Shown here: positions 3,001-29,499 of the stretch, in pieces
How the letters are laid out: each line of letters begins with the position of its first letter
Position numbering within the stretch: the first letter of the stretch is position 1
Assembly: GCA_964200185.2 (NCBI GenBank)
Contig: CAXNAD020000066.1
Coordinates: 1-33,232 of the forward strand
Reading direction: 5' to 3'
DNA length: 33,232 nt
DNA from: Choristocarpus tenellus KU-1152
Lineage: Eukaryota > Protista > Phaeophyceae
Position numbers and translations under genes: made by a program
The notes under the pieces: generated by a model
The model's input: only the letters and a program-made list of their open reading frames with translations
Databases searched by the model: none
What the model was told of the DNA's origin: nothing

Positions 3001-6000
3001 GAAGATAATACTAGTCTACTTGCACATCTGATTGAGGTCTGTGTAAAAAAGAGGTTTTTTATTTCTCAAACGGACTAGCTCTCGTAACTCTGCAAATAGA
3101 TCCAAATTAAAACTCTGTGGAAACACTATTTGAAACAATTCAATAGTTTATTTCCCAAACTAGACAGTGGTAATTTGTCATCAAGTGTAGGGTACGCTTC
3201 TCACATTTGAGTCTGAACTTGGCTGTTCGCAGCTGACACTATACTGGAAGTCACCTCTGCAGCAACAGCATCATCCTCCAACAGTTTGCTCACACAATCC
3301 ACTCCACCAAAGACTCGCCTCCCTACGTGTTTCCACAGAACACGAGCACCCTTTGGGGAGTGACAGACCAAAGAATCATGTGCAAGCAGGATAACAAGTG
3401 GGACCACATCACTGACAGCACTTGTTCCACAGCAGCCAAAGAGGGCAGTTGTCAATCGACTCGGAGGAAGCAGCGCCTTTCCTGAATCTTGGTTATCTTT
3501 CGAATCTTTTGAATCTTGGTTATCTTTCGAAGGCAATGTGCTTCGCTCCTTCTTGCTCATTTCTGCTGCAAATGCCACAGTGTGCACCACCTATTTAGTG
3601 TCCACATCATGCATTAGGTCAGATTTAGATCCCACAAGAGCATATTATTGTGAATGGATACTGATTGAATTGAGCAAGACTATCGAGGAGAGAAACCATG
3701 TCCCCTTCTTGCATGTTTTTTCATTCTCCTTTGCCATCCACAGCCAAACACACAGAAAGCACAACTGACCTGCTTTAATGCTCCAAGCAAAAACCGCTGG
3801 GCCTCAGTCACACAGCTGTGAATGGTTCGTACAGCATCCAGTGCAGCCTGCCTCACTCCTTTCTCAGGGAGAAGCATACACTGTACAAGAGCCATACAGG
3901 CTGCATTGGTGACAGAGGAAAGCCTGTTTCCCTGATCACCCTCCTCAAACAGTGTTGCTTGAGAACGGAAAATTGTGCCTGCAGATGCCAATAGACGGCA
4001 AAGAGCAACGCAAACAGATGACATGAATGGTCCTGAAGCTTCCCCTGTAGAAATAGCGTCAGGTTTGTATGATGTCAGCATCATGGTTGGATAAAAGAAA
4101 GACGATGCATCCTTCAGCAAAGACCAGGGAAAACTTGTGCACACTTCTGTGGAGACAGTGGCATCTTGAGCTGCTATATCGAGGAGTGTCTTCGCCGCCA
4201 ATATGCCGTCTGGATGAAAGTTGCTCGACTTTCCTGCTGCACCATCTATCCGCTGCAGCAGGCACGGCACAAGGGGTATCAACTGAGTACAGAGACTGAT
4301 ACATCCACTCAGCTCAGATACTGCCGTAAGATATGCTGCCGCCACAGGTTTACTTGAATGCTTTGTCCCTTTCTTCAACAGATCCAAAACTTCAGAAGGG
4401 ATGCTGTCAAGCATTGTTATCCATTGTATCATGCACTGTAGCCCAAGTGATCGAGTTTCTTCATGAGATTCCTTGTCCACAGCTGGCACTAGTGCATTGA
4501 CTGCACCCAAAGCAATGGATGCCACCCCTTGCTCCAATGATAGAACCCCCATCCGCACATGGATGAGTCCCATTATGACGCACTGCCGTTGGTACCACTG
4601 TGCCAAGACCCCTGCCTTGCCACCTAGCACCCCAAGTAGCTCCATCACAATGTGCTCAAGGACCTGCCATTCAAATAAATCCACACATGCACCATCAAGT
4701 GTCAGAGAAGAAGCACATTCCAAGGAAAAAGACTTGAGAACTCTGGTAGTGCTCACCAGCCCTGAAAACCTTGATCAAATGTGAGTAATAAATTATCCAG
4801 TGTTCCCTGGACATACTTGAATGCTCGCAAGATCACACCTCAGGAGCGCTGCAGTGCCTTGCTATACTTCCCACCAGCTCAACCGCAAGGTGGCGAACAT
4901 CCTCCTTCGGAGACCTGAGTTGCCGCAGTAGAGGTGGCACAAATATCTTTTCTGCATAAGGACTCAGGTCAATTGCAATTTGTGCAACAACAGATTTGAC
5001 CGCAGCCAGGATACTATCAGGATTCTTTTTCTGCAGCTTCTCCAACACTGGCTCCATGACGTTGGAGAAGTCGTTCTCTGTCAAGGATCCAATCAGAGTT
5101 GCAAAACTGTCCAACTTGTATTGTACACTCGAACTGCCCTTTGCCATCAAAATGTTCTTCATGTACAAGTCCATTAGGCGGGGTTTGATCATGCCTGTGT
5201 AACAGTGATGTTATAGCAAAAAATTGCTGTCAATGTTTGCATAAGAAGTTGATCACAAGACCACAATATGTAGCAGTACGAGTGATCCTTCTAAGTGGTT
5301 CCAACTTTTTACACAGGAATGCCTTCTGTGATATCACAACCAGTCACCTTGGCAAACATGAGGCACAGCCAAGGGAACCAAGAAAGGGTAGTGGCAATAC
5401 CCACTACCTGTCACATTTCAGTAGACTATGCACTTTCTGCGCTCTCTAAATCAATATTATGGATTGTATGCAAACAGTGGCATCCTTGGTGTGATCACAT
5501 ATATTTAACAACCAACTTGCGTAACACCCTACATAATGGCCAGTCCACAGAAGAGGAGGAACTCACTTTCATACTCTGGCCTTGAGACGTAGACTGATGT
5601 AACCACTGAAAGAGCTACCAGATTGATGCCGCACTTATCATCTGAAGTCAAGATGTCTAGGTAGGTACTGCACAAATGGGAACGCGAGATCAACGCCCAT
5701 CGCGTGATCTTTGCTGCTCTTGACACTAGTTTGACATCCCCCATACCGCCAATTACATCATGTACACAGCCCTGCAGTCTTATTAATTTAACTAGCCAAT
5801 CTGGAGTAGGTTCCAAGCCCTCAGATGGCACCATTGTCCTGAGGATCACCTGGGCGACACGAAGGGTTCTCATCTGTTCCCCTGCATCCACACAAGACTC
5901 GGCAAATCCTTACTCAGAAGAGCCAAGGGTATTTAATTGTAACACAGCACAAGGATTACACAGTTAGGAACGAGTAGGAGTATTAAGGAAAGGTATGTTC

Positions 6001-6622
6001 ATTGTTGATGTCGGACGTACTATTGATGCATTGTATTTCAGCCGTTTGTACGCTACAAGCGTCCCAACGGCATCACAGTCAAGGGCAAAAAAGTGGTGGG
6101 AGTAGGGGGATAGTCTAGTAAGATCGACATCTACTAAAATTATGAGAGATGCAGAAAAAAGCAAGTTCTCACCATCGAGGTTCACTACACACACTTGCAC
6201 GAAGAGAGGGCAAATCGGTGAAGTCGCGGCCATGGCAATTGCACCATGTAGCCCCCTTTGCCACACACGCTCGAGGTAATGCGGCCGAACGATAGAACCA
6301 AGAAGTAGACGGGCCAACATCCGAGTCTGTACCCGCGTAAGCTCTTCATTGGCAGCCAGGCCGACCAACTGAGCATGATCGCCACCCTTGAGGACCTCGC
6401 TCAGATGCTGCAGGGAATCGAGAAGGAACAAAAAGGGACGTTGGAGAAGTCGATCTTTCACTTCGCTTCCAATCGGCAACTGAATTGCACCAAAGTCGAT
6501 TAAAGCCAACGTTCAAGGGGTTCTCGAGATCTGCAATTGCTCACCTTCAAGGAATTGAGACGATGCTCTAGACTCCGGTCTTCCAAGCCGTTAGCTAGTT
6601 GAGACTCCAAGAAGCTCTCCAT
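1..6622 (-). CDS. GCN1: Translational activator GCN1 (ILITYHIA-like HEAT-repeat protein), 5' part; gene continues beyond window position 1
   Basis: Manual spliced model with all GT-AG junctions phase-consistent: exons 6622-6545, 6407-6173, 5908-5567, 5194-4839, 4663-3770, 3590-3205, 2031-<1 (4,322 nt, ~1,440 aa). The last exon is stop-free for 2 kb and is missing from the ORF track because its stop lies outside the window. GCN1-typical segments: 'LEKLQKKNPDSIL', 'DIDVFFTAKGVLY...EVEWEERIRAEL', 'LECRLWLSKFD..GENIALAGQLWE', 'DWRREGVVVFMGSAAKHLDKDDPKVISIVHTLTGALSTPSEAVQIAVSDCLAPLVK'. Confidence 0.93.
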
Positions 6623-11512: not shown

Positions 11513-12996
11513 ATGGCGAGCCCCCACAGTCTGTCATCCCTGGCGCAAAGCCCACCATCTCATAGAAAGAACTCCAAGCTGACCGAGGAATGTCAGACCA
11601 CACTTGCTCTACGTTACGCATTGGCTCTTTCTTCCTCTGAGTCACAAGAGACTCCCGAGGGGTGTGGAGTATAAATTGGTGAAAGAGTTTGGAGTGGGAA
11701 AGAGACACCCTAGACAGGTGTGGATGCGTATCAGAACAGTGAGAATACCGTCTCCCTGAAATCACAAGGACGATCAGGGCGGCCGTTGGACTTTACACCA
11801 ATGCAAAAAGTGAAGATCCGGAAAATCAAGGCCAGTAATCGCACACTGACTATCAACCAACTTTCCGCCAAGCTCACCGAAGCAGGCCTCACAGTCGGTG
11901 GCTCAAAGCTTCATTGCTGGCTTGAAGCCATAGGGGCAACAAGGGTTCAGCGGCGCATCACCCCTAACCTTTCATTTTCTCACAAGAAGAACAGGGTGGA
12001 CATCATCCTCAACCAGATCTCCCACAACCACAAAACCTACAGGACTGGCCTCAACACCATTCACACCGACGAGGCGTGTTTCTACCTCATCCACAAACCA
12101 TCCACAAACCATCCACAAACAAGAGATGGTGCGCATGTTTCTGGGGGAGGAAAGGTGGGCTCGATGAAGGTGCAACATAAAGAGTCATATTCTCAAAGTG
12201 ATGGTCATCTCCTCCATTTCGCACCCGGATCATTCTCATGATTTCAATGGCAAGATCGGGATATGGTAGGTTTGCGTCATCAAGGAGGCACAACAGACTA
12301 CAGCACAGAACATGAAGGGTGAGGAGTACGAGGTCAAAGTCACCGTCAATGCCGAGTGGTACCTGGAGTGGTACATGGAGTGGTGGTACCTGGAGTGGTA
12401 CATGGAGTGGTGGTACCTGGAGTGGTACATGGAGTGGTACAAAAGTGGTACATGGAGTGGTACAAAAGTGGTATATGGAGTGGTACAAAAGTGGTACATG
12501 GAGCAGGTGTTTTGTCAGTGATCAAGGAAAAATTGCCGTGGCTGGAATCGGGAGGGGCGTCAATTCAGCAGGACAGTACGACTCCTCATATGGGCAAGGG
12601 CACGGTGTAGAAGCTGGATGCTGTAGGGTGGACGAGGAATGGAACATTAAGCTCATGACCAGCCAACACGGTCACCAGATCTCAATGTCAATGATTTGGG
12701 GCTTTCTGCATCTTTGAAGAGCAGGGTTTAGGCGGAGTGTTGGATCCGTTGATGAACCTATAGAGGGGGTTTCAAGTATGTTTCATGTGTATGATGCAGA
12801 CACACTCAACAGGGTCTGGCAGAGTCTGTTTAAGAGGTACAATCAGGTGTTAAGGGCTCTGGGGGGGGACTATTTCAAGGTAGAGCACACCGGGACAATA
12901 AAAAGGCAGCAGGAGGGCGGGTTGGCTAGATCAGTCGAAGTAGACCAAGTGGCCTCCATGGTGACCCTGGATTGGTGGGTTGACGGTGTCAAATAA
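11513..12996 (+). pseudogene. Mariner transposase pseudogene (frameshifts, stops, internal repeat expansion)
   Basis: Pieces in shifting frames: 'SGRP..FTP' HTH region, 'IHTDEACFYL' (first D), 'KSHILKVMV', 'FNGKIGIW', 'IQQDSTTPH' (second D, 12572), 'QPTRSPDLNVNDLG' (third D, 12693; 121 nt from the second D, about 39-40 codons), 'TLNRVWQSLFKRYNQVLRALGGDYFKVEH'. Confidence 0.9.
12354..12503 (+). repeat. Compound tandem repeat of a (G/A)AGTGGTAC core inside the transposase
   Basis: About 12 copies of AGTGGTAC/T arranged as 27-bp units (GAGTGGTACATGGAGTGGTGGTACCTG-like) followed by 23-bp units (GAGTGGTACAAAAGTGGTACATG). Confidence 0.9.
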
Positions 12997-17417: not shown

Positions 17418-17901
17418 AACCAAAACCAACTGTCAAAATTCCCTCCACAACCATTTTTACCACAGCAAAGACAAGGACAGTAGCTAGAACCATGTTAACA
17501 TATTTCATGGCTACATAGAGTGTTGATACCTTTTAACTATTCTGCTTTATCTTCAGAAAACAACCAAAAAGTGAAAGTAGTATCATATAGGGCCCTGATA
17601 TTGACCTATTCCTTTCAAAATTTCACAAATACTCGAGTATATTTTTTTTACAAGAATCAAATCAACTTTTTTGGAACACTGTAACTTTTCTGCTTCTGTT
17701 GCATTAGCAGAGGAAGTGCCAACAGGTATGGTCATAGGATGTTTATGTGTATTCTTTCTCCCATAGAGGACCAAATACATCATTTCAAGTGTTGGGGGAA
17801 CACTATGACTGCGATTGGAACCAATGACAGCACAAATTAATGTGTACATAAGATCATTGATACATATATGTGTATGTTTGAGTGCGGTGTTACTTATAAC
17901 A

Positions 17902-18171
17902 TCACTAATCATACTAATCACACTAATCACACTAATCATACTAATCACACTAATCATACTAATCATACTAATCACACTAATCACGCTAATCACACTAATC
18001 ATACTAATCACACTAATCATACTAATCACACTAATCATACTAATCACACTAATCACACTAATCACACTAATCATACTAATCACACTAATCACACTACACT
18101 TATCACACTAAGCTTATCACACTAACCACACTACTACACTTATCACACTTATCACACTAATCACACTAATC
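17902..18171. repeat. 9-bp tandem repeat (ACTAATCAY)n, ~21 near-perfect units plus a degenerate tail
   Basis: Directly visible. It generates the spurious TNH/ITL/MISVIS ORFs in the track. Confidence 0.95.
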
Positions 18172-22830: not shown

Positions 22831-23311
22831 ACCCTCCACCATCTAACCTTTCATCAACAGGTCGTACTCATTTTTTAGACCAAACTCATCAGACCTGTTC
22901 CACGCCCTCCCAATCGACCCTGCTGAAGCCATTAAAGCCTAGAACTTGTGCTTATTTGCTTTCTATAAATATCATATAGGCAAGTCAGACTCCTTGTAGT
23001 GGTTCTAGCATATAATAGAGAATAATCTCTTACGTTGAATATGGTGATGTGTACCAAACTCAAAAATAACTCGAACACCACAACACACACACGTTTGATA
23101 TTTTTTGTTTCCATATTACTAGTAGAACTACTCCTTTGGTCCAAGCAAAACAGAGCACAAGGTTTGTTGTCAGTCTCTTTCAATACACCAACTAGCAGTT
23201 CCTGAATTCTCCCTGCGATTTGTGTTGATACCTTCTGTGAAGGTAAAGGAACTGACTGTCCTCGATGGTCAAAATCTTGCTGCAAGCTACTTTTGATTGT
23301 AATTGTGCAAC

Positions 23312-23580
23312 ATGACTAGACAGTCATGGCAGTGGCAAAGCGAAACTCAGACGTTTTGGTGCCTTGTTTTTCTTCTGGTAGATTTCCCTCTGAAGATCAA
23401 TTCTTTTCAGTGGGGTTCACAGAAGGGCCTTAATAGGCAAACCCTTTGGGTTCCGCAACAGGCGCTGTCAACATTTTGGAGTCTACATCTCAACACCCTT
23501 ACACCCACTCCCCCTTCTTACGGGAGTAAGTGGTATATCAAGAGTGTATGTAGGACCTGTGCTGCAGTAAGATCCACAAG
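23312..23580 (+). other. Putative bipartite plastid-targeting presequence of the RSH (signal peptide plus transit peptide)
   Basis: Hydrophobic core FWCLVFLLVDFPL, possible cleavage INS|FQW (Phe at +1, as in the ochrophyte ASAFAP rule), then an S/T-rich stretch of ~60 residues lacking acidic residues. Confidence 0.55.
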
Positions 23581-26500
23581 TCTGGATGCTGATAAGGAAA
23601 GAGAGGTAGTCCTCTCGGACTGGTTAGAAGAAAGTCTCCTAGACCACTATGTGCAGAGGGATAAAACACCTTCCATGGGGCTGGAGCTAGTTAATTTAAG
23701 CGGACAACAACCGGAAGAGCATCGACAGGGGGACCAGGACGACTACAGCAGCGCTCCATTCCGATTTCACCTCCTTGTTCAGGTGATAATGGCGAGCTTG
23801 GGCAGTAGCATCGTCAATATGTCGTCCCTCTCGGTTTCATGTCGCATGTAGTGGCTAATATCCCTTCCGTATTTGCATTGCAGCACGTATGGAGTGAGCT
23901 GACTAAGGATGATCAACTTGCTTACCTGGGCCCCGTGGGGCAGGCCAAGGTCAAGCGGGTTTTAAGTGTCCTGGCGGCGTATGGGGCACTCCGTGAGCAC
24001 CCACAACAGTCAGGTGTTGCCAGCCCCCAAAAGGTAACACAGACTACTCCTACATGCGCGCATGCATGCGTCGGAATGTTGAATTTATTGCTTCTCGGGC
24101 GTTGTTTCCGGAATTGATGCCATGGAGTTGAATTCTGCGGCTGTTTTTCTGACCTACATATATCCTTTCTTGTCTGATCAGGCCTTCTCTGAGATGGATA
24201 TTGATTCGGATGGCCAAGTAACATTTGAGGAATTTGTGCAGTGGTATAGCAAAAGTGACTCCCATGAACGGCAGAGATCAGAGGTTCAAGCTTCTGCACT
24301 CGTGTCTGGGAGAGCCCTTTCGAGTGACGTTGGACAAAATATTGAGGAAGCACAAAGTTACCCAGGCAGTGAGCAGGGTGAAGGTGACATCAGTGGAGAT
24401 GGGGTGAAATTGAGAACAGGGTGGGGAAGTCAGGGCTCTTCAAACATGGTATTGGTGTCTGATTATGCTGCATATACAGGGGATCGAGGTGAGGCAAGGA
24501 AAATGACCGCTATGGAGGAAGACACTATAAGGGAGCGATGGCTGGCAGAAGAACTTGCTGAGGATGTCAACACACCAAGTGCCGAACAACCTTGGAGCTC
24601 AATGGCAAATGGCTTAAAGCAAATATTGGAAGTCGCGCATGGGGTGGAGGAGAGGACAATGACTGCTGAGGAGAGATGCTCAATCAGGGAGCAGTGGCTG
24701 GCAGAAGAGTTTGATGAGGGTGTGTGCACACCCATAAGCATTGAGCAGCCACAGATTTCAACCTCCCATGACTTAAAGCAGGGTTTGGAAGTCATGCAAA
24801 GCAGTAAGGAGAGATCAATGACACATGAGGAGAAAAACGTTTTAAGGGAGCGATGGCTGGCAGGAGACCTTGCTGAGAATGTCTACACACCCAGTGTTGA
24901 GCAACCCAGGAACTCAGCCTCCAGTGACTTGAAACAGGCGTTGGAAATTGTGCAGATACTTGTCAAGGCCCATGCTGACTCTGACACCATCATTGCAGCG
25001 CTTGCCAGCTCAATCATCCGGAACCCTCTAGGGAGGTAATGTTTGATACATTGAGAAATTGGCCGCTTTGTCTGCTGAAATGAGGTCACTTCTCAATGAG
25101 GTTGCTAAAATGGTTTGTGTATTCTTTCACTCAAATGGACAGAATATTCCTTGGCGTTTTTCATGCCAGGTACAACCTTGGGGTCATAGAAGAACAGTTT
25201 GGACCCATCATTCGAGGAATTGTTGAGGACCGACTTGTGCTGGAGCGATTACCTGAGCCCCCGTCATCTTCTTCCTTTGTTACTCTTCAAAAGGTTTGAA
25301 ACCAAGGGGGTTCTACCAATGCACTTAAATATCCACAACATTAGAGCAGTGGTTTGATATTTTGTGTGCAATACAACATTACACATTCCACAAATTTCTG
25401 TTCCTTTCCCACCAACAGTCACATCAGTACAAACTTGACACATTTTCGCCCAAGTATTATTGTATGTTTCTCTTCTCAGTGATGTATTTCCATTCATTCC
25501 CTGTTGCATTTTTCAGGCTAAGGGGATGCGTCCTCTTCTTGACATGGATGATCATGATGCAAAGCTCCTGCGAGAGTTCTTGGTGAGGCGAATAACCATC
25601 TCCTTGTGAGAACTTGTGAGAATATTGATTTATGAGTTTATGAGGCATTCATACACACAATTATGGCATTTTAATCCTGTTCTGTACATGGTATTTATGT
25701 CTGTATGTGGAACTCTGTTGAGTTCAACAGTCTTAACTATTTTGATAACACAATCCTACCCGTAACTATCACTCGATACCAGACTCATGAAAGTTGGAAT
25801 TTGACATAGCAGAAGCTGCACATGGTGTTGACTGGGATATTGGTACAAGGTTGGCGTTTGAGATACTTAGTACAAACTGTTTGCTGCTATGACAGGTGCA
25901 CTCCTCAAAGGATGCCCGGGCAGTGGTGGTTCATATGGCTGACCTTGTGTATCGTCTCAGACTGCCTAGTGATACACCAATTTACCACCGACAAAATCTT
26001 GCCATTGAAGCTCTTCAGGTGAATCAGCAGTGCCTGCTGCTTTCATGCTCTCAATTTCTAGTCAGGATTGTGTTTGTATGTGAATCGCATTCAAGTTTGC
26101 ATTTATCGGAACCTTGAGGATTTTAATTGGTTTTGTTGTATCATTTTTTTCTCTGAAATCTGTAAACTCAACAGCCTGACCCTGAGCAAGACAATGTTGT
26201 GTTGTGTTTCTCAAGGCTTAGACCATTGATTCTGTAGCAACAATACAAACCAGATCCTACATTGGTGAACATTTGAGAGGTGTTGCTCTTTGTCTTCATT
26301 CTACTAACAGTGTTGATGTTGAGCCCTGTGGTAAGCTTCACAAGCAAGACATACTCTGACGGACCAAAACTCAATGCACTCAGATCTATGTACCAGTTTC
26401 CAACGCACTAGGCCTGGGGTCAAGCTTCTGTGAGCTGGAGGAGTTGGGATATCGCACTCTCTTCCCACAGACATACAGAATGCTCTCTGTATGGCATCAA

Positions 26501-28524
26501 AGGGTGACACAAAAAAATGATTTTTGATTGTTACTATTAGCATTACACCTATTTTGGCAGTTAAGGTCAAGCTCCATCACACTTGCATCTTTGTGTACTT
26601 TGACAAACTACAATGTAACTTGCACAGTCACTTTTGTACAGGTTGGGCGTCAGGGGCATGTCATTGTTGCACAAGTAAAGGAGGATATCCTCAGGGCTCT
26701 CAACTGTAGGCAAGACTTGTCATGCCATGTTCAAGGCTACGACATCCAGGGGCGCACCAAGGGACTTGTCAGCACCTTCCGAAAGGTATTATGTGTGTTA
26801 AGCTTGATCTGTGTGTATGCAGAGTATGTACCTGTGCGTTTTGGAGTCACAAAGGTTTGGGTCTCCATGGTTGCGTGTAACAGTGCTGAATGCTTGGCCT
26901 TAGGGGGTTGAGATGAAGTATGTCATATGATTTGAGATGAAGTATGTCATGTGGTTTGAGATGAAGTATGTCATGTGAATTGGTCACAACAAGAACAAAA
27001 GGTATTTTGTCTTTGCATTTTTTTTTGTCTAAAAGGTCTTCCGTCAGAATAAGCGTGCCGATGAAGTGCATGATTTGGTCGGTCTACGCATAGTGGTGAC
27101 ACCCAGTATTCCACAGAGGGAGGCAGAGGACGTTAAGCCACCTGTAGCAGGGAGTGAGAAAAGGATTAAGTTGGCTACAGTGAGCAGTGATAGTGCTTGT
27201 ACCCCAAGCTTAAGGGATGACAACAGATCAGGCGAGCATGGAGAATGGGAGGGCATTTGTGAGACAACTGAACTCAGCAGAATTGGGGAGGTCAGCAGAG
27301 ATGTCATTTGTGTGGAGGCTGGTAAGGTGTTCAGTTCAAGTACATATCCACCTCCATACCTTGATTCAGACAGCTGCCTGCTTCATGATGTGTACCATGT
27401 TGTAACAAGTCTCTTCAGTGAGGTGCCCGGGCGTTACAAGGTAAGTTGTGACTCTCATTGAAGAAACATACTATTCTGGTGAGCTTTGTCATTGCCCCTG
27501 CTGGAAGAGGTTTGATGTTGGCATTGTTCTGCTCAATAAAGCTGTACAAGGAAGTGGATAACTACTGATTCGTTGAGACTCCAAAGTGTACCAAGCACCA
27601 TGTTGCCCTAGGTTTTAAGTCTTGAGTGGCGGTACCAACAATGGATGATGTACACCAACCTCGCCTGTACATTCTACCGACATCCTCTTGTCCCTCAAAC
27701 AGAGTTATAAGAAGGATCTCTTACACCAAAATGTCACACCAGTGTTCTTCAAGAACTACAAAAATTCAACAGGTTGCCAAGTTCTGTAAAGTGACTATTT
27801 AGATATTGTATATATATTCGACAGGAGTCCTGCGCTGTTGACATTGATAGCCCAATAAATGTTCCACATGCTCATTATCATACCAATTTACTGAACCATG
27901 ACATACAAACCGTCTCTGCCCCAATCTGGTACTGTTTACCATATCTCATGCATTCACTCAGTTCCTGGTCCTTGCTGTTTGAACACTGAGACATCGAAGA
28001 ACTGAGCTATCAGATAGACTCCAGTGTATGGAATGCATTAGGTCAATTAGCAATTGGTTGTACAACCCATACTTGAAGCGGTGACTGCTTAAGTGCACTT
28101 GAACGGACTGTGACTTCTGAACCTTGTCCCTAATTCTGGTGCAGAACTATGTTGACTTTCCCAAGCGAAATGGTTATCGGAGCTTGCACACAACAGTTAG
28201 TCACCCTGATGGACTCATGATTGAAGTACAGGTGGGTCCTGTGTTGGACAGACTCCCAAACTGGGTATAGTTGACCGTATCTTCTGTGTCAGGTGGTCAT
28301 CAATCTCAGCTTGCTTGTACCTTTGCAGAGCCTTCAGTGACTGGGTACCTACATTTTTTTTTTCATTACAGATTCGCACAAAGAGTATGCACATGGAAGC
28401 AGAAAATGGAGCTGCTGCACACTCTCTGTACAAAGGAGCGCTTCAAGATCCAACAGATGCCCTCGCATTCCGCTCAAAAATGCAGAGCCAGCCACCACTG
28501 TCTACGACAAGGAACACCAGTTGA
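23312..28524 (+). CDS. RSH: RelA/SpoT homologue, (p)ppGpp synthetase, predicted plastid-targeted, with EF-hand and degenerate HD domain (~898 aa)
   Basis: Eleven phase-consistent GT-AG exons: 23312-23782, 23884-24033, 24182-25035, 25170-25293, 25517-25582, 25896-26018, 26384-26503, 26642-26785, 27036-27440, 28145-28231, 28372-28524 (2,697 nt). Motifs: 'IEEQFGPIIRGIVE', 'KDARAVVVHMAD', 'AIEALQIYVPVSNALGL...ELEELGYRTLFP', 'GRTKGLVSTFRK', 'EVHDLVGLRIVV', 'VPGRYKNYVDFPKRNGYRSLHTTV', 'EVQIRTKSMHMEAENGAAAHSLYK'. Confidence 0.93.
24197..24232 (+). other. Canonical 12-residue EF-hand Ca2+-binding loop within the RSH
   Basis: AFSEM-DIDSDGQVTFEE-FVQWY: D1, D3, D5, G6, hydrophobic 8, T9, E12, with flanking helix Phe residues. 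Confidence 0.88.
24503..24960 (+). repeat. Three in-frame tandem repeats (156/159 bp; 52-53 aa) in RSH exon 3
   Basis: Units start at ATG 24503, 24659 and 24818. Consensus MTxxE+xxIRE(R/Q)WLAE(E/D)LxExVxTPSxEQPxxSxxxDLKQxLEVxQ. Confidence 0.9.
26908..26979. repeat. 24-bp tandem repeat x3 in RSH intron 8
   Basis: TTGAGATGAAGTATGTCATRTG-- repeated three times head to tail. Confidence 0.9.
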
Positions 28525-29499
28525 AGCATTTAAACAACACCAAGAGGCATACCATAGCTGTATGCCCACATTAATTGTTGTAGTGCAACATGCCATGTCC
28601 AAAACAACTGATATAGACTAGAGGCAGTTGGAGGGGGATGCTCCAGCAGGATAATTTATGTTACCTGCAGGTACAGGGTGCCACAAGGAAATGCCCCATA
28701 TATAATGTAAATAATAAGTTGAAACACATTGGTCTTTAAGGAGTATGAGCTTCTTTAAGGTAGGTAGACATCCTACATTGTGAAATAGCAGTTTTCCTCC
28801 TTTTTATAGTTGTACAAGATTTTAAATCTTAAGCCAAAGGCAATCCATCCACAACGCACTATAAATCAATATTTGTCCAGGTTTAAAGACTTACTTTAGG
28901 ACCACAGTTCCTTGCAACCATTGTTAAGCACAAGTGTATTTCCCCCCATAGTTTGAAATAGGCCAGGTGATTGGCAGCATGGTATAATGGCAATAAAATC
29001 CTTCTAATAAAATATACAAGACAATTTCAATAGTCTTCTCTCATCATACCACCTGCTAGCCATCACTTTTTTGCAAGGAAGTATCATTTCACACATTTTC
29101 CCTTGTAGTTTGTGGGTGCACAGACTAAAAAAATGCGTCATGTTTTTGAGTCACTGTGATTCAATGAATCAGGAGAAGATTAGAAGATTTTTTTTTTTCT
29201 GCCTCTTGTTGCTTGAACCACATTAGCAAGGTCATTACAAGTTGTAAACACTACCGTGAGTTCATGAACCATGTATATGCATGCTGAGCACAGTGGGGGT
29301 AAGTACCTACTAAATTTGACATTGATCCATCTTCCGGGTATGCTCTCCTGGCTGAGGAAGAAGTGGTATAGAAGGCAAAGGGTCAGATTAAGACGAAGAG
29401 GTTGACATGAACCCAGTTGGGGTGATGACTGACCAGCAGAAAGTAAAGTGTGTGAAGGTGTGGAAAAAGTAAAAGCCTGTTTGATTTAAGGCTGGCATA

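Follow-up and report, generated by a model that had tools for sequence, protein, structure and literature searches.

Plastid ppGpp signalling is, to our knowledge, understood almost solely in plants, in which the RSH enzyme CRSH is the one known calcium link. We analyzed an EF-hand-containing gene of the RSH4 (ppGpp synthase) type from Choristocarpus tenellus KU-1152, an early-branching brown alga. The window, by which we mean the whole stretch of DNA analyzed, is 33,232 nucleotides (nt) long (positions 1 to 33,232 of the forward strand of contig CAXNAD020000066.1, assembly GCA_964200185.2). The gene, at window positions 23312-28524 on the plus strand, is confirmed to be a real and expressed member of the RSH4 type.

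Land-plant CRSH is activated by calcium through C-terminal EF-hands (PMC6881373, PMC10107265). In a survey that included algae, two CASH RSH4s of the red-and-green clade were found to have EF-hands "though at the N-terminus" (Avilan et al. 2019, Sci Rep, PMC6881373). Nannochloropsis gaditana EWM28606.1 is marked 'EF(Nterm)' in Table S2 of that survey (PMC6881373), and the second protein is probably that of Bigelowiella. Ectocarpus CBJ27227.1 was placed within the red-and-green clade of RSH4 as sister to Nannochloropsis EWM28606.1 with 100% support, and the accessible part of Table S2 gives the Ectocarpus protein no EF mark (PMC6881373). A 2022 review describes algae as having no EF-hand RSH and RSH4 enzymes as being without an N-terminal extension (PMC10107265). 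Our literature search found no paper on ppGpp in brown algae and none whose main text links Nannochloropsis with ppGpp and EF-hands. The architecture is thus already catalogued in an algal RSH survey yet unstudied. A reading of this DNA made from the letters alone (the sequence-only reading) had allowed that the layout might already be catalogued; it was indeed reported for N. gaditana EWM28606.1 by Avilan et al. 2019 (PMC6881373). Novelty is limited because an orthologue of the RSH4 type is already catalogued. What we add is conservation of the EF-hand throughout the ochrophyte relatives recovered, its likely site in the pseudo-hydrolase, a correction of the public model, a triplication in Choristocarpus, and a lead concerning intron 6.

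Gene model and catalytic domains

The gene runs from an ATG at 23312 to a TGA at 28522-28524, with exons totaling 2697 nt. In a splice-site check of 23000-28800, all 10 introns had GT..AG ends and the frame was unbroken through all exons. The protein comprises, in order, a presequence, a first HD helix, an EF-hand, a variable linker, three repeats, a dead HD domain, and a RelA/SpoT synthetase domain, with the following features.

23312-28524, plus strand: complete RSH4-type gene of 11 exons, with 898 codons and a TGA stop
23312-23782, 23884-24033, 24182-25035, and 25170-25293, plus strand: exons 1-4 of the gene model
25517-25582, 25896-26018, 26384-26503, and 26642-26785, plus strand: exons 5-8 of the gene model
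27036-27440, 28145-28231, and 28372-28524, plus strand: exons 9-11 of the gene model
23312-23782, plus strand: exon 1, with the presequence, an acidic region in which the VVLSDWLEES motif is conserved, and the first part of the conserved pre-EF helix
23884-24033, plus strand: exon 2, predicted to encode the (pseudo-)HD fold's first helices and ending in AAYGALREHPQQSGVASPQK; a segment conserved across ochrophytes
24182-25035, plus strand: exon 3, with the EF-hand, the variable linker, three repeats, and the HD helix at which the pseudo-hydrolase fold is predicted to resume
24197-24232, plus strand: EF-hand calcium-binding loop DIDSDGQVTFEE, with D1, D3, D5, G6, V8, and E12; match to a PROSITE-type pattern
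24489-24959 (approximate), plus strand: three tandem units of 52-53 amino acids, direct repeats of 156/159 nt that are 72-77% identical
24866-26503, plus strand: degenerate HD (pseudo-hydrolase) domain, spanning the last part of exon 3 through exon 7; Pfam HD_4
26019-26383, plus strand: intron 6, retained in the sole complementary DNA (cDNA)-like contig and in the public model, with a stop at 26115-26117
26642-28437, plus strand: RelA/SpoT synthetase domain, exons 8-11; Pfam RelA_SpoT on exons, intact motifs
27105-27350, plus strand: variable insertion of ∼80 amino acids within the synthetase domain, in exon 9; length differs among orthologues

Exons 2-11 are collinear, end to end and without gaps at the junctions, with the Ectocarpus sp. 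orthologue P0003 (925 amino acids). Exons 7-11 fall ungapped on its residues 576-842, and every junction is contiguous, that between exons 6 and 7 included. The exon 1 model has its start codon in common with a public Choristocarpus protein, P0001. This collinearity, the 11-exon GT-AG model, and the joining of 9 of the 10 introns in cDNA-like contigs (see below) bear out the view that the gene is an intact, spliced RSH with a presequence. The presequence has a hydrophobic stretch and then F (FWCLVFLLVDFPLKINS followed by FQW). By eye, the same arrangement occurs in Ectocarpus, Scytosiphon, and the protein P0086, with L replacing F in Discosporangium, and we infer from it a putative import into the secondary plastid.

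The synthetase half carries the motifs GRTKGLVSTFRK, DLVGLR, GRYK, PKRNGYRSLH, EVQ followed by IRT, and AAHSLYK. RelA_SpoT (PF04607) was matched in exons 9-11; exon 10 alone scored 27.3 bits against a cut-off of 27, exons 9 and 11 matched adjoining parts of the profile, and the orthologue P0003 scored 81 bits. In an alignment of 25 RSH proteins that included bacterial Rel, the window residues fit the invariant columns R/K/S/K, D..R, K, PK.NGY.S.H, E.Q.R, and H..YK. By its residues, this half is intact: every position invariant in working Rel enzymes is kept. Exon 9 (135 residues), which contains the variable insertion, is 38.5% identical to P0003 residues 664-776. The stop follows the last synthetase motif by ∼28 residues, and a Pfam scan of every exon gave no TGS or ACT match. 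The synthetase domain and the short tail lacking TGS/ACT therefore stand as first described.

Conversely, the hydrolase half is degenerate. Pfam HD_4 matched residues 436-597 of the public protein P0001 at 46.2 bits, and SS..RN (AALASSIIRNP) stands in place of the catalytic HD..ED. The loss of these catalytic residues predicts a dead hydrolase, in agreement with the degenerate HD domain recognized earlier. With its degraded hydrolase, conserved synthetase, absence of TGS/ACT, and tree placement (through its orthologues), the protein has the features of an RSH4.

Between the EF-hand and the resumed HD domain lies a disordered linker that ranges from 175 to 320 residues among orthologues (22 sequences). 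The E..R..WLAG motif and the first pseudo-HD helix after it are conserved across the orthologues. In Choristocarpus only, the unit containing this motif is triplicated; it is single copy in other species, including the sister genus Discosporangium. Each unit has a conserved E..R..WLA motif and a DLKQ.LE helix start, and the last continues into the pseudo-HD domain. The repeat insert seen by the sequence-only reading thus corresponds to three direct repeats at ∼24489-24959. Tandem Repeats Finder did not pick up the coding repeats at 24489-24959, which were found by the direct-repeat search.

The EF-hand, its conservation, and its likely insertion site

The start of exon 3 reads AFSEM-DIDSDGQVTFEE-FVQWY, and a pattern scan identified DIDSDGQVTFEE as the sole PROSITE-type EF loop in the gene. 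Pfam EF-hand_1 scored 26.3 bits on exon 3 and 27.4 bits on the public protein P0001 (cut-off, 25.4), and the EF-hand forms a helix-loop-helix in both of the structure models described below. Pattern and Pfam match together uphold the claim of one canonical EF-hand. In the joined exon model, the distance from the loop to the NGYxSxH synthetase motif downstream of it is ∼590 residues; in the orthologues scanned, it is ∼400-520. No EF loop was found downstream of the synthetase in the pattern scan of the window gene and its orthologues.

An exhaustive protein search with exon 3 recovered the 628-amino-acid P0001 (whole exon identical), ∼20 exon-3-like frames from brown algae, a Phaeothamnion protein, and metagenome proteins. 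Further relatives came from a word search with the catalytic region: Chrysoparadoxa, an MMETSP transcript, one metagenome protein, and six proteins of eustigmatophytes, Nannochloropsis oceanica among them. The brown-algal orthologues include those of Ectocarpus, Scytosiphon, and Discosporangium. Every relative recovered carries a single EF loop at the same site (e.g., DFNRDGEVSFDE, DYDSNGEVSFDE, DVNGDGELTFEE, and DVNRDGQLSFEE), and no recovered lineage, from brown algae to eustigmatophytes, has lost calcium-ligand positions 1, 3, 5, and 12, G6, or the hydrophobic residue at position 8. Across 22 sequences, the mean majority-residue frequency was 0.88 for the 22-residue EF block versus 0.31 for the linker. 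Loss of the loop in orthologues had been named as grounds for abandoning the calcium idea; instead, the EF-hand was present in all orthologues recovered across ochrophytes. Its sequence conservation shows clear constraint on the EF-hand RSH4 in brown seaweeds, Nannochloropsis, and other ochrophytes.

The exon 3 search also matched large proteins with many EF-hands (P0019, P0022, P0041, and P0065), which repeat the motif AFAEMDPNGDG.V.F.EF..WYH. This motif is very near to the RSH EF-hand plus its flanks, and by that resemblance these proteins could be a source family of the inserted EF-hand.

Trees were quick maximum-likelihood reconstructions from a small sample with some long branches, and orthologues stand in them for the window gene. 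The proteins with an upstream EF-hand formed a single ochrophyte clade (SH-aLRT, 99). The red-algal RSH4 of Cyanidium, which lacks EF-hands, was sister to this clade with support of 96-98, and green RSH4s fell outside. The orthologues clustered with green RSH4 and Cyanidium and apart from RSH2/3 and bacteria, and the topology was unchanged after removal of everything before the resumed pseudo-HD domain. It is also in line with the tree of Avilan et al. 2019, in which the Ectocarpus and Nannochloropsis proteins are sisters. In a loop scan, green RSH4-type proteins with TPR repeats had two EF loops downstream of the synthetase and Cyanidium had none. These trees give good support to the view that ochrophytes and the green lineage recruited EF-hands independently, because an EF-less red-algal RSH4 separates the upstream-EF clade from the green RSH4s. 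The convergence with plant CRSH suggested by the sequence-only reading gains support accordingly. By sequence and tree, the gene is the Choristocarpus member of an ochrophyte-wide RSH4 subfamily, the group of Ectocarpus CBJ27227.1 and Nannochloropsis EWM28606.1. Diatoms are without this RSH4 subclade, and the GFP localization in a diatom that had been proposed is therefore off target.

A further suggestion was that the EF-hand arrived by exon shuffling. The exon 3 acceptor falls exactly before AFSEM, in phase 0, and the same intron is present in Ectocarpus, which has introns 2-10 in common with Choristocarpus and is without intron 1. However, the 17 introns of the Chrysoparadoxa gene lie elsewhere, with one inside the EF loop and none at the start of the EF-hand, and the Nannochloropsis gene is intronless. 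Among these four lineages, an intron at the EF-hand start occurs only in brown algae, whereas the tree and the loop scan indicate a greater age for the EF-hand; the intron thus does not speak for shuffling. On the 3' side of the EF-hand, there is no exon boundary in any species examined. Intron positions thus leave exon shuffling highly improbable.

The position of the EF-hand within the fold was examined in a structure model of residues 70-626 of the Chrysoparadoxa orthologue P0090, built from 25 sequences (pLDDT, 79; pTM, 0.75). Local pLDDT was 85-93 for the pre-EF helices and 82-87 for the EF-hand. Rel N-terminal domains matched this model from its residue 22 onward, at Z scores of 20-25. 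For Mesh1, SAH, and RelH, which are stand-alone hydrolases, the alignment ran from model residues 32-38 to ∼335, with just 155-170 residues aligned. The pre-EF helix is read as the first HD helix because both Rel and the stand-alone hydrolases align from the pre-EF region. The model accordingly agrees with the earlier observation that the HD region begins before the EF-hand. The EF-hand plus linker is likely to be an insertion that separates the first helix of the modeled pseudo-hydrolase fold from the following one. At this position, active hydrolases hold the SG(D/E)PY..HP active-site loop.

Searches with hidden Markov models (HMMs) in both directions gave one register, in which the family segment aYLgeegqarvKqaLvvlAa faces bacterial Rel residues 31-50 and AaysALrEHplq faces plant AFYEAERAHRGQ. 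Other results speak against this placement. The insertion was read from the predicted structure of an orthologue (P0090). The HMM matches of exon 2 to the HD start had nonsignificant E values (0.003-1), and hhalign of the pre-EF module against canonical HD N termini was not significant (probability, 0.6%). Additionally, MAFFT alignment A3 placed the canonical first HD helix on the WLAG motif instead, a possible alternative at the sequence level with which the three-dimensional model disagrees. We also considered exon 2 as a degenerate partner EF-hand and rejected this after the larger P0090 model, in which the upstream helices belong to the HD fold.

Transcripts, intron 6, and the surrounding contig

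Three runs of one study contain the stretch. Run X1 contains a 12-kb contig identical to it and probably represents the source DNA. The evidence for splicing comes from run X3, whose type is not on record as RNA and whose contigs are spliced (cDNA-like). X3 contigs have exact joints for introns 1-5 and 7-10 (9/10), including both introns that flank the EF-hand exon. A single X3 contig joins exons 1, 2, and 3. X3 record 11 covers exon 3 free of differences and is joined to exon 2, and a separate X3 joint connects exon 3 with exon 4. The transcript therefore includes the EF-hand exon, joined on both sides as predicted. X3 contigs likewise cover the three repeats without any difference. Skipping of the EF-hand segment had been named as a refuting outcome, and the transcripts retain it.

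Intron 6 is the only one of the 10 for which no joint was found among the X3 contigs, an absence that raises the prospect of a synthetase-less product and so counts against a working enzyme. X3 record 13 is collinear over 25895-26502, with the contig that joins exons 7, 8, and 9 reading through exon 6, intron 6, and exon 7. The public protein P0001 (Choristocarpus tenellus, 628 amino acids) consists of exons 1-6 plus 32 intron-6 codons and then a stop. Its tail, VNQQCLL...SEP, is a read-through open reading frame into the intron, and the protein has no synthetase because the model stops there. The public Choristocarpus gene model is truncated, with its catalytic domain missing, and needs correcting.

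Record 13, which reads through intron 6 while the other nine introns are joined, and the end of P0001 in that intron are both compatible with a locus that mainly yields intron-6-retaining RNA. Such RNA would either encode the 628-amino-acid synthetase-less protein or be degraded, and the full-length enzyme would be rare or conditional. We consider this quite unlikely. Exons 7-11 are open, correctly spliced together in X3, and retain all catalytic residues; their identity to Ectocarpus is 51-77% (39% for exon 9). Intron 6 itself has ordinary GT..AG ends, is conserved in position in Ectocarpus, and is spliced in the orthologue models. Retention of intron 6 is a lead rather than a finding because contigs show presence, not absence. 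The intron may be detained or regulated, in which case its retention may gate RSH expression in Choristocarpus, or the pattern may be a sampling effect.

Two more multi-exon RSH loci occur in the same assembly, on contigs C97 and C4310. The short contig C18857 (2267-2632, locus L001) has an uninterrupted 754-amino-acid frame with RelA_SpoT, which looks like the bacterial Rel of an associated bacterium and not an algal gene. Upstream of the RSH gene, at window positions ∼3200-6500 on the minus strand, is a multi-exon GCN1-type gene. Within it, the open reading frame at 4833-5189 (minus strand) matches Pfam GNC1_N (stalled-ribosome sensor GCN1) at 80.8 bits. In the eukaryotic cytosol, GCN1 is the counterpart of a starvation sensor, and its proximity to the RSH gene is a curious coincidence. 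Long open frames of short-period repeats at 12087-12717 and 17583-18092 (e.g., GTWSGTWSG and MISVISVIS) look like microsatellite-type DNA rather than genes.

Proposed calcium control and comparison with known systems

The best explanation of the whole, which we consider reasonably probable, is that the protein is an orthologue of the ochrophyte RSH4s that is imported into the plastid and whose synthetase is switched by calcium at the inserted EF-hand. The RSH4 protein would make (p)ppGpp in the secondary plastid, and calcium bound to the EF-hand would alter the conformation of the pseudo-hydrolase. This change would in turn switch the synthetase through hydrolase-synthetase coupling, as in bacterial Rel/RelA, enzymes whose synthetase activity is linked to the state of their hydrolase domain. 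The outcome would be the job done by the two C-terminal EF-hands of CRSH, reached by an independent route. A more specific version, which we offer tentatively as possible rather than probable, is that a single EF-hand was grafted into the former active-site loop, with calcium replacing nucleotide/metal occupancy as the allosteric on/off signal. The conserved E..R..WLAG helix downstream may serve as an internal partner of the EF-hand.

Alongside the objections to the insertion site and the missing intron 6 joint, several points weigh against calcium control. EF-hands usually function in pairs, and this one is unpaired: there is no second loop, and the Pfam pair model EF-hand_7 reached 21.8-22.9 bits against a cut-off of 30. 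EF-hand_1 clears its cut-off by just 1-2 bits and falls under it in several orthologues, and plastid targeting was read by eye from presequences only. A lone hand without a partner loop would also suit a structural or interaction element, which might pair with a second chain in a dimer or hold a permanently bound ion and would not depend on a calcium signal. Consistent with this idea, the small-module model considered for the partner-hand idea (pLDDT, 69) showed a weak S100-like match (Z, 5.3), and S100 proteins are dimers; the same model had no significant Foldseek match. We nevertheless regard a purely structural role as unlikely. Retention of the calcium-ligand positions, G6, and the hydrophobic position 8 in all lineages recovered is expected of a working ion site, though it does not show regulation.

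If calcium does control RSH4, calcium-to-ppGpp coupling evolved more than once. The ochrophyte enzyme would then represent a mechanistically distinct fusion of calcium sensing with the plastid stringent response, the third independent one counting Bigelowiella, and its insertion site would be a natural experiment on how the Rel hydrolase half controls the synthetase half. Ecologically important algae, including brown seaweeds and Nannochloropsis, retain this differently built EF-hand RSH4.

The closest known proteins are the Ectocarpus and Nannochloropsis orthologues, which have the same segment order, EF loop (DFNSDGEVSFDE and DVNRDGQLSFEE), dead hydrolase, intact synthetase, and lack of TGS/ACT. 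Unlike them, the Choristocarpus gene has three pre-HD units and the extra intron 1; the 2010 Ectocarpus gene model is without a presequence. Avilan et al. 2019 called the EF-hand N-terminal, whereas our model places it inside the predicted pseudo-HD fold.

Bacterial Rel/RelA proteins (Bacillus subtilis Rel 8acu, Thermus thermophilus Rel 6s2u, and RelSeq 1vj7) share the hydrolase-synthetase fold, at Z scores of 20-25 over ∼300-340 residues of the orthologue model. They have no EF-hand and instead carry TGS/ACT domains that sense ribosomes. RelA, like the Choristocarpus RSH4, has a dead hydrolase.

The Bigelowiella natans RSH4 (JGI 80753; Avilan et al. 2019 data set) also has EF-hands upstream of the catalytic region and comes from a secondary-plastid alga. 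By eye, two canonical loops, DVDGDGFITPEE and DVNQDGHIDIYE, can be read ∼90 residues ahead of residue 308, where the catalytic region used for the paper's tree begins. Its appended EF pair contrasts with the single inserted hand of the ochrophyte RSH4s, and from this visual comparison it is probably a third independent fusion.

Land-plant CRSH (Tozawa et al. 2007, cited in PMC10107265) belongs to the same extended RSH4 family and likewise combines a degraded hydrolase, an active-type synthetase, no TGS/ACT, and EF-hand motifs; a plastid role common to both would follow from the putative presequence of the Choristocarpus protein. CRSH has two EF-hands after the synthetase, whereas the Choristocarpus RSH4 has one, before most of the pseudo-hydrolase. 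Calcium activation has been shown for CRSH only.

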